A stretch of DNA of 41,556 nt, from positions 89,156,155 to 89,197,710 of the forward strand of contig NC_068981.1 in assembly GCF_001194135.2 (NCBI RefSeq), in the 5' to 3' direction. Positions 539 through 744 of this stretch are shown piece by piece. The DNA comes from Octopus bimaculoides (taxonomy: Eukaryota). A program made the translations under genes and the position numbers. The notes beneath the pieces were generated by a model that was given only the letters and a program-made list of their open reading frames with translations, was not told the origin of the DNA and ran no database searches. Position 1 is the first letter of the stretch, and every line of letters starts with the position of its first letter.

Positions 539-744
539 ATGGTATATGCTGGATGGATATGGGCTGTACTGCACCTGGTCATCTTGCAGCAGATTGCATC
601 AGTCCTTGGATGTTGGTGGCAATTTGAACCGGGAATGACTTGGCAATGGCAGTTGACTAGTCCGCTGGATCTTACTTATGAAGTAGAGATGTATGATGTA
701 GATCTATACGACACGTATAAACCGCAGTTCGACTACCTCAAAAA
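539..744 (+). CDS. GH114 coding exon 1: signal peptide plus N-terminal motif ([68 protein letters not shown])
   Basis: 3' part of ORF 467..748. Acceptor TTTCTTCAG/CAG at 528/531, AAAATGG start context at 539, donor AA|GTAAGT at 745. WQWQL and YDVDLYD match the GH114 N-terminus as I recall it. Confidence 0.92.

Follow-up and report, generated by a model that had tools for sequence, protein, structure and literature searches.

The 41,556-nt stretch of Octopus bimaculoides DNA considered here (NC_068981.1, positions 89,156,155 to 89,197,710), which we call the window, carries on its forward strand the four exons that encode isoform X3 of LOC106879613, a gene labelled 'uncharacterized protein' in RefSeq. 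It corresponds to positions 17252-58807 of locus L001, on the 200-Mb chromosome record CM046601.1. We consider it on balance probable that the exon at 539-744 opens an old, intron-bearing mollusc gene for an enzyme of glycoside hydrolase family 114 (GH114), of the type represented by Ega3 of Aspergillus fumigatus.

Structure of the gene

The exon starts with an ATG at 539 (context aaaATGg) and runs through 68 open codons and two further bases to a gtaagt donor. We take it to be a real exon because, on its own, it matches both the start of the Pfam GH114 profile (E 1.9e-4) and an independent homologue fragment of exon 1 (E 4e-16); beyond that one short fragment, a homologue search with exon 1 only found nothing. 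The remaining coding exons were located through a motif scan of six-frame translations. Joining 539-744, 5985-6280, 11598-11746 and 31819-31962, all with GT-AG boundaries, yields 795 nt that encode 264 residues and a TAG stop, and the product is identical to isoform X3, which establishes the structure of the gene. Its features in the window, all on the forward strand, are as follows.

529..744, first coding exon in the window (X3 ATG at 539; donor GT at 745-746, phase 2)
539..610, codons 1-24, predicted signal peptide (rule-based reading and comparison)
745..5984, intron 1, 5.2 kb, phase 2, with microsatellites and minus-strand retroelement-like open reading frame (ORF) remnants
5985..6280, coding exon 2, 296 nt, which completes Lys69 and runs to the first base of codon 168
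6061-6063, Asn95 sequon in exon 2
6091-6093, loop tryptophan Trp105 in exon 2 (Trp154 of Ega3)
6196-6198, catalytic nucleophile Asp140 in exon 2 (Asp189 of Ega3; role by alignment to Ega3)
6281..11597, intron 2, 5.3 kb, phase 1
11598..11746, coding exon 3, 149 nt
11612-11614, Asn173 sequon in exon 3
11687-11689, catalytic acid/base Glu198 in exon 3 (Glu247 of Ega3; role by alignment to Ega3)
11747..31818, intron 3, 20 kb, phase 0, with seven assembly gaps, repeats resembling short interspersed nuclear elements (SINEs) and decayed transposon ORFs
31819..31962, final coding exon (144 nt, of which the last three, 31960-31962, are the TAG), with the VFHVEY strand, the Asn227 sequon (31846-31848), a basic C-terminal segment and Cys262
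32178 and 32394, AATAAA motifs, candidate poly(A) signals

Two further isoforms prepend MSPVLRFK (X1) or MSPVLFK (X2) to the X3 protein. Their extension draws on a 14-nt coding exon (MSPVL) at positions 10001-10014 of L001, 7.25 kb upstream of the window, and a tandem NAGNAG acceptor (cagcag) at 526-531 of the window lets the following exon start at 529 (X1) or 532 (X2). The same acceptor and upstream exon are arranged in this way in O. sinensis. In both longer forms one or two basic residues are placed ahead of the hydrophobic peptide with which X3 begins. The preliminary description of this DNA spoke of a system, but we found a single gene: no other gene was called within 10 kb on either side of LOC106879613.

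Family, fold and secretion of the encoded protein

The spliced protein matches the GH114 profile of Pfam (PF03537) with 274.9 bits against a cut-off of 27 (E 5.5e-82), residues 34-258 covering profile positions 1-231 of 231, and its membership of the family is thereby established; in NCBIfam there is only a sub-threshold match to TIGR01370. The closest solved structure by sequence is that of A. fumigatus Ega3 (PDB entry 6OJ1; E 2.4e-60), with 42% identity over 235 aligned residues. An AlphaFold2 model calculated from an input of nine mollusc sequences has a predicted local distance difference test score (pLDDT) of 80.6 and a predicted template-modelling (TM) score of 0.79. It comprises a helix at residues 3-23, a segment at residues 21-26 where the pLDDT is below 50, and a barrel thereafter. 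When this model was submitted to Foldseek the top match was again Ega3 (6OJ1; E 9.3e-26, TM scores 0.80/0.84), followed by the GH114 enzyme of Fusarium solani, GH191 enzymes and the hydrolase domain of PelA. The octopus protein is thus predicted to adopt an Ega3-type (beta/alpha)8 barrel.

In Ega3, Asp189 serves as the nucleophile and Glu247 as the acid/base, and Trp154 is carried on a mobile loop (PMC12054363). The alignment places Asp140 (in the motif IEPDN), Glu198 (LTESC) and Trp105 (SKWPGERW) of the octopus protein at these positions. Asp140 and Glu198 are invariant in all nine aligned mollusc sequences. The Trp105 position, at the tip of the mobile beta3-insertion loop, is occupied by tyrosine in one chiton paralogue. 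Fourteen acidic positions are invariant among the aligned molluscs, 12 of them acidic in Ega3 too, so that the cleft would be suited to binding a polycation. Six cysteines are likewise invariant in the molluscs. Five of these (Cys76, Cys134, Cys200, Cys206 and Cys239) align with cysteines of Ega3, while Cys262 lies in a C-terminal W-x3-C that matches by spacing the WVEYC at the end of Ega3, an end that was read from a primer (PMC8546845).

These comparisons support the assignment to GH114 of an Ega3-like enzyme whose catalytic pair is intact. Given that fold, catalytic pair, loop tryptophan and acidic cleft are all kept, homology at this level of identity suggests a galactosaminidase activity like that of Ega3 as the most likely one. 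The preliminary description had proposed a secreted Ega3-like enzyme; the full-length GH114 match, Ega3 as the best structural match, the intact catalytic pair and a conserved N-terminus of secretory type all point the same way.

That description had drawn attention to a hydrophobic N-terminus with a V-x-G cleavage pattern, and the translation of 539-744 is exactly as it was quoted there. The predicted signal peptide consists of a hydrophobic h-region from Gly5 to Leu16 and a polar c-region from Gln17 to Gly24 (QQIASVLG), with cleavage between Gly24 and Cys25 (V22-L23-G24/C25), a site that obeys the rule of small residues at -3 and -1. We compared 20 sequences, drawn from cephalopods, chitons, gastropods, bivalves, transcripts and the bacterial sequence P0085. 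A hydrophobic N-terminal peptide of about 15-25 residues stands directly ahead of the first conserved motif of the domain, (C)WW.P.PG..WQWQ, in 19 of them, the single exception being a doubtful Pomacea gene model. The peptide is kept in position, not in sequence; the cephalopods have small residues at -3 and -1, and in several related sequences the peptide is too short for a membrane span. At its C-terminus (...NAWRLSCDS) the octopus protein has neither a hydrophobic tail nor a KDEL motif. The conserved peptide supports secretory targeting, and cleavage would most likely occur after Gly24.

The helix might instead stay uncleaved and serve as a type II anchor, so that the ectoenzyme would work at the cell surface or in the Golgi; a membrane anchor is also predicted for Ega3 (PMC9860509). 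The first 29 residues of the octopus protein are uncharged, which is long enough for an anchor, the span from Gly5 to Gly24 is about 20 residues, isoforms X1 and X2 set arginine or lysine in front of it, as in type II anchors, and AlphaFold2 models residues 3-23 as a single helix. However, the peptide of other molluscs, about 15-19 residues in total, is too short for a membrane and ends with the classic small residues at -3 and -1; in octopus the hydrophobic run is interrupted by Gln17-Gln18, the helix abuts the barrel with no linker where Ega3 has about 20 disordered residues, and the fall of the pLDDT below 50 comes exactly at residues 21-26. We regard an anchor as unlikely. Whether the peptide is cleaved or not, the catalytic domain is predicted to face the lumen or the outside.

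Sequons for N-glycosylation are present in the spliced protein at Asn95 (NST), Asn173 (NLS) and Asn227 (NRS), the residues named in the preliminary description. Their number is at chance level, with a mean of 1.42 after shuffling and P(>=3) = 0.16, so the count carries no signal and sequon enrichment was rejected as a line of evidence. The Asn95 sequon is the only one of the three that is kept in every cephalopod sequence (as NST, NCS, NES or NDS). The Asn173 site is also a sequon in Ega3 (NMS) and the Asn227 sequon is limited to Octopus species.

Distribution, origin and genomic setting

Homologues occur among the cephalopods in Octopus sinensis, O. vulgaris, Argonauta and two cephalopod-like transcripts, and among other molluscs in Liolophura, Gigantopelta, Lottia, Patella, Littorina, Pomacea, Crassostrea, Mytilus and Pinctada. 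Exon mapping shows that three introns coincide in alignment column and in phase (2, 1 and 0) between Octopus, Argonauta, Lottia, Crassostrea and the chiton Liolophura, from which it follows that the gene, introns included, is older than the split between chitons and the other molluscs. Crassostrea has one intron beyond the shared three; in the copy of C. virginica that was mapped it is of phase 2 and follows codon 108. This oyster has two adjacent GH114 genes, at 1-4033 (minus strand) and 5001-10777 (plus strand) of locus L003.

Intact orthologues with equal exon sizes are present in O. sinensis and Argonauta. In the comparison with O. sinensis the ratio of nonsynonymous to synonymous substitution rates (dN/dS) is 0.117; with Argonauta, for which dS is close to saturation, it comes to about 0.04. 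A Logan contig of 1192 nt carries a homologue of 69% identity and represents a spliced transcript, since it is intron-less and holds the complete coding sequence. The gene is functional and under purifying selection.

One property sets the octopod proteins apart. They are basic, with an isoelectric point (pI) of 8.4-8.75 (8.75 in O. bimaculoides) against 4.5-6.2 in other molluscs and 4.6 in Ega3; decapodiform-like transcripts encode acidic proteins, like non-cephalopod molluscs and Ega3 (pI 4.5-6.2). Seventeen lysine or arginine positions are common to three octopods and are shared by at most one of five non-cephalopod molluscs. Many of them lie in the last exon (31819-31962), and the octopods lack several acidic residues of the ancestral protein.

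Outside the molluscs, an exhaustive search with the mollusc profile (6348 representatives) gave as the best matches per domain single-domain bacterial proteins with 330-385 bits, compared with 405-454 for the molluscs themselves. The nearest of these bacterial relatives belong to genomes and metagenome-assembled genomes of Myxococcota, Bradymonadales and Alphaproteobacteria and are about 50-54% identical. No other animal phylum appeared among the named top matches, only named matches being judged. The top total scores went to multi-domain proteins of protists and chytrids, including the ichthyosporean Abeoforma. Taken singly, their GH114 domains score about 24-264 bits, mostly 98-264, and protists were rejected as closest relatives because the lead in total score is the sum of several domains. 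These proteins (P0178-P0191), from Plasmodiophora, Diplonema, Hondaea, Abeoforma and chytrids, carry 2-5 tandem GH114 domains each. Judged by such matches, GH114 has a much broader eukaryotic distribution than one would gather from the literature on fungi.

A neighbour-joining tree with 200 bootstraps recovers cephalopod monophyly in 200/200 replicates and an all-mollusc clade in only 84/200, so that common ancestry of the mollusc genes rests on the shared introns and not on the tree. Nor does the tree settle which bacterial group, if any, is sister to the molluscs. It puts the bacterial sequence P0085 beside the cephalopods and not with other bacteria, a placement that is probably due to long-branch attraction. 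P0085 is a GH114 gene (972-1793 of locus L008) on a compact, prokaryote-like contig, where it adjoins a gene for an ABC substrate-binding protein, and its product is 51% identical to the octopus protein. From similarity, a bacterial origin of the mollusc gene is likely.

That the closest relatives outside the molluscs are bacterial might also be taken as a sign of contaminating microbial DNA, and a decaying pseudogene was considered as well. Spliceosomal introns that contain octopus repeats interrupt the gene, which is placed on a 200-Mb chromosome record; its orthologues in O. sinensis and Argonauta are intact with the same exon sizes, dN/dS is 0.04-0.12 and a spliced transcript exists in a related species. 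The intron structure and the selection data rule out both ideas, and we assign them a negligible probability.

The window as a whole is eukaryotic in character, with a GC content of 20-42% and many microsatellites. Outside the exons it holds only introns and downstream sequence with repeats, gaps and decayed transposon ORFs. Ten runs of N, 4466 nt in total, mostly adjoin microsatellites; seven of the ten fall in intron 3, so that the true length and content of this intron are uncertain. Two dispersed families of SINE-like repeats, about 300-400 nt long and with 61-95% identity to the reference copy, are found in the introns and downstream.

7047-7056, 12744-13501, 14946-15795, 18236-18664, 18952-18961, assembly gaps
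21696-21705, 26532-27453, 30673-31047, 33014-33531, 39866-40449, assembly gaps (continued)
5307-5688, 16428-16819, 20142-20533, 36490-36827, SINE-like repeat family one
2769-3037, 17803-18180, 27439-27686, 34181-34580, 38873-39273, SINE-like repeat family two
28059-29017 (minus strand), 960-1527 (minus), 31228-31562 (minus), 41051-41308 (plus), decayed mobile-element ORF remnants

Scans of the window for tRNA genes and Rfam families gave no match, and the intronic ORFs have no significant match in Pfam. Two adjacent ORFs among the remnants (175 and 143 residues) show a faint match to the DDE_1 transposase family (E 0.099, below threshold). The others, which are without Pfam support, resemble the flanks of reverse transcriptases of long interspersed nuclear elements.

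Proposed role and comparison with known systems

We favour, with moderate confidence, the explanation that LOC106879613 encodes a mollusc GH114 galactosaminidase that is targeted to the endoplasmic reticulum (ER) and acts on microbial matrix polymers. The N-terminal peptide would bring the protein into the ER and most likely be cut after Gly24, and a (beta/alpha)8 barrel of about 240 residues, probably disulfide-stabilized and possibly N-glycosylated, would be released outside the cytoplasm. With Asp140 as nucleophile and Glu198 as acid/base in an acidic cleft (the 14 invariant residues), it would function as a retaining endo-alpha-1,4-galactosaminidase on cationic, partly de-N-acetylated alpha-1,4-linked polymers of N-acetylgalactosamine (GalNAc) and galactosamine (GalN). 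To our knowledge, such polymers come only from microbes, as Pel in bacteria and galactosaminogalactan in fungi. At a digestive or mucosal surface the enzyme would probably process the matrix polysaccharide of microbes. Ega3, itself an endo-alpha-1,4-galactosaminidase, acts specifically where galactosaminogalactan is de-N-acetylated and also disrupts Pel-dependent biofilms of Pseudomonas aeruginosa (PMC8546845); the degradation of the de-N-acetylated polymer and the effect on Pel biofilms had been given correctly in the preliminary description. Pel is a partly de-N-acetylated alpha-1,4 GalNAc polymer, the genes for which are widespread in bacteria (PMC9135694).

We infer the substrate, the cleavage of the signal peptide, the location and the physiological role from these comparisons, and several observations weigh against the account just given. 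At only 42% identity to Ega3 the specificity could differ. One would not expect the basic pI of the octopod proteins in an enzyme with a polycationic substrate. The uncharged N-terminal stretch and the basic residues contributed by X1 and X2, discussed above, would suit an anchor. Finally, literature searches returned no report on the expression, localization or activity of LOC106879613.

A feeding, digestive or lysosomal role is not separated by sequence alone from a role in defence or in the remodelling of an endogenous glycan. The spread of the gene through the phylum, grazers and filter feeders included, and the low dN/dS fit a digestive origin. The enzyme could work in the gut lumen, or in lysosomes of the digestive gland or haemocytes, and degrade ingested or phagocytosed microbial exopolysaccharide, a function inherited from grazing or particle-feeding ancestors. 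The gene is found in chitons, limpets, Littorina, Pomacea, oysters, mussels and pearl oysters, the shared introns trace it to the mollusc ancestor, it is duplicated in tandem in Crassostrea, and strong purifying selection is typical of metabolic enzymes; a signal peptide with sequons would suit sorting to lysosomes just as well. Other glycoside hydrolases that animals have taken from microbes are mostly digestive. Nevertheless, octopods are carnivorous, the nutritional value of GalN polymers is doubtful and the sequence has no readable lysosomal sorting motif. We judge a digestive or lysosomal enzyme to be possible, though short of probable.

Retention of the gene in carnivorous octopods and their shift to a basic protein may leave room for a defensive or microbiota-shaping role. 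As a special case of the galactosaminidase that we favour, the protein could be a dedicated innate-immune effector, secreted to skin mucus, egg coats, saliva or the gut, that dissolves biofilm matrix of the Pel or galactosaminogalactan type. It has the predicted fold and the catalytic residues of Ega3, whose antibiofilm activity is proven, an N-terminus of secretory type, and a history of purifying selection in octopods, which do not graze on biofilm; the octopod-specific basic shift (pI 8.4-8.75, 17 shared lysine or arginine positions) recalls cationic antimicrobial enzymes such as lysozyme. On the other hand, the gene is single-copy at the octopus locus and, with a dN/dS of 0.04-0.12, is without the diversification common in immune effectors, it is found in grazers and filter feeders throughout the phylum, and it has no partner genes within 10 kb. 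This proposal is tentative and, in so narrow a form, rather improbable. Of the host defence reading in the preliminary description, the secreted-type Ega3-like enzyme stands, but 'defence system' is an overstatement, as a digestive or lysosomal role fits equally well. A bolder scenario, in which a bacterial galactosaminidase was gained before the molluscs diversified and has been retained ever since, over more than 500 million years, as an effector that is secreted onto mucosa and eggs and dissolves the cationic biofilm matrix of the Pel or galactosaminogalactan type, the octopod version being reshaped into a basic, surface-sticking protein, is speculative and we think it unlikely to hold in full.

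The enzyme might also remodel a glycan of the mollusc itself, such as GalN- or GalNAc-rich mucus, egg jelly, cuticle, or beak or shell matrix. A low dN/dS and conservation that spans the phylum and more than 500 million years would suit such housekeeping, and the fungal and bacterial enzymes belong to the pathway for the producer's own polymer (PMC9860509). No synthase or deacetylase gene is adjacent in the neighbourhoods inspected in Octopus, Lottia, Crassostrea and Liolophura, which speaks against it. Nor are animals known to make an alpha-1,4-GalN(Ac) homopolymer, and we consider this explanation very unlikely.

The family, the fold and the chemistry were already known, and the gene stands in RefSeq as uncharacterized. 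Literature searches that combined GH114 or polygalactosaminidase with molluscs, octopus or the identifiers of the gene turned up no paper on an animal GH114, and a survey from 2024 places the family only in brown algae, chlorophytes, fungi and bacteria, animals not being listed (PMC11468063). GH114 enzymes are studied as antibiofilm agents, and the papers searched describe bacterial, fungal and algal ones only. An intact, selected, secretory GH114 gene across all major mollusc classes would represent an animal-encoded enzyme of the antibiofilm type and a candidate for a host influence on the microbial films of gut, skin or eggs. It would also offer a ready eukaryote-expressed, probably glycosylated homologue for enzyme work, and an example of an ancient gene, probably of microbial origin, that was fixed in one animal phylum and is datable by its shared introns. 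If the protein is a biofilm-matrix effector, it would be an unrecognized kind of animal innate-immune enzyme, aimed at the matrix and not the cell wall; if it is merely digestive, the result is an ordinary one.

Among known systems, animal lysozymes and chitinases resemble the octopus protein in function only, their folds and substrates being unrelated. They are secreted glycosidases directed against microbe-made substrates and serve both digestion and immunity in molluscs; we know of no experimental link between GH114 and immunity in any animal. The protist and chytrid proteins share with octopus the presence of GH114 domains in a eukaryote, but carry 2-5 of them in tandem, with lower scores per domain. 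The F. solani GH114 enzyme (PDB entry 9EP6), GH191 enzymes and the PelA hydrolase domain (GH166), at ranks 2-12 of the fold search, have the (beta/alpha)8 fold with the same placement of Asp and Glu (PMC12054363), although identity is much lower, at 27% for the first and 12-18% for the others. The GH166 enzymes prefer acetylated or partly deacetylated stretches of GalNAc (PMC8546845). Closer are the bacterial single-domain GH114 endo-alpha-1,4-polygalactosaminidases, with Pseudomonas sp. 881 as the prototype, which have the same motifs and a catalytic domain of similar length; their N-terminal regions are longer (most have about 280-350 residues in total) and their genes are intron-less.

The nearest counterpart is Ega3 (PDB entries 6OJ1 and 6OJB), a GH114 enzyme of the galactosaminogalactan cluster. 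It has its own predicted transmembrane anchor, followed by a linker of about 20 residues, and its gene belongs to a five-gene biosynthetic cluster (PMC9860509). The octopus protein, unlike Ega3, has a short N-terminal peptide that abuts the barrel, no cluster partners, three spliceosomal introns in its gene, a shorter loop after VFHVEY and a pI of 8.75 compared with 4.6. What the two have in common is the full-length Pfam match, an identity of 42% with TM scores of 0.80/0.84, the aspartate nucleophile, the glutamate acid/base and the loop tryptophan, 12 of the 14 acidic residues, five aligned cysteines with a further one matched by spacing at the C-terminus, and an NxS sequon ahead of the SIGLKN strand.

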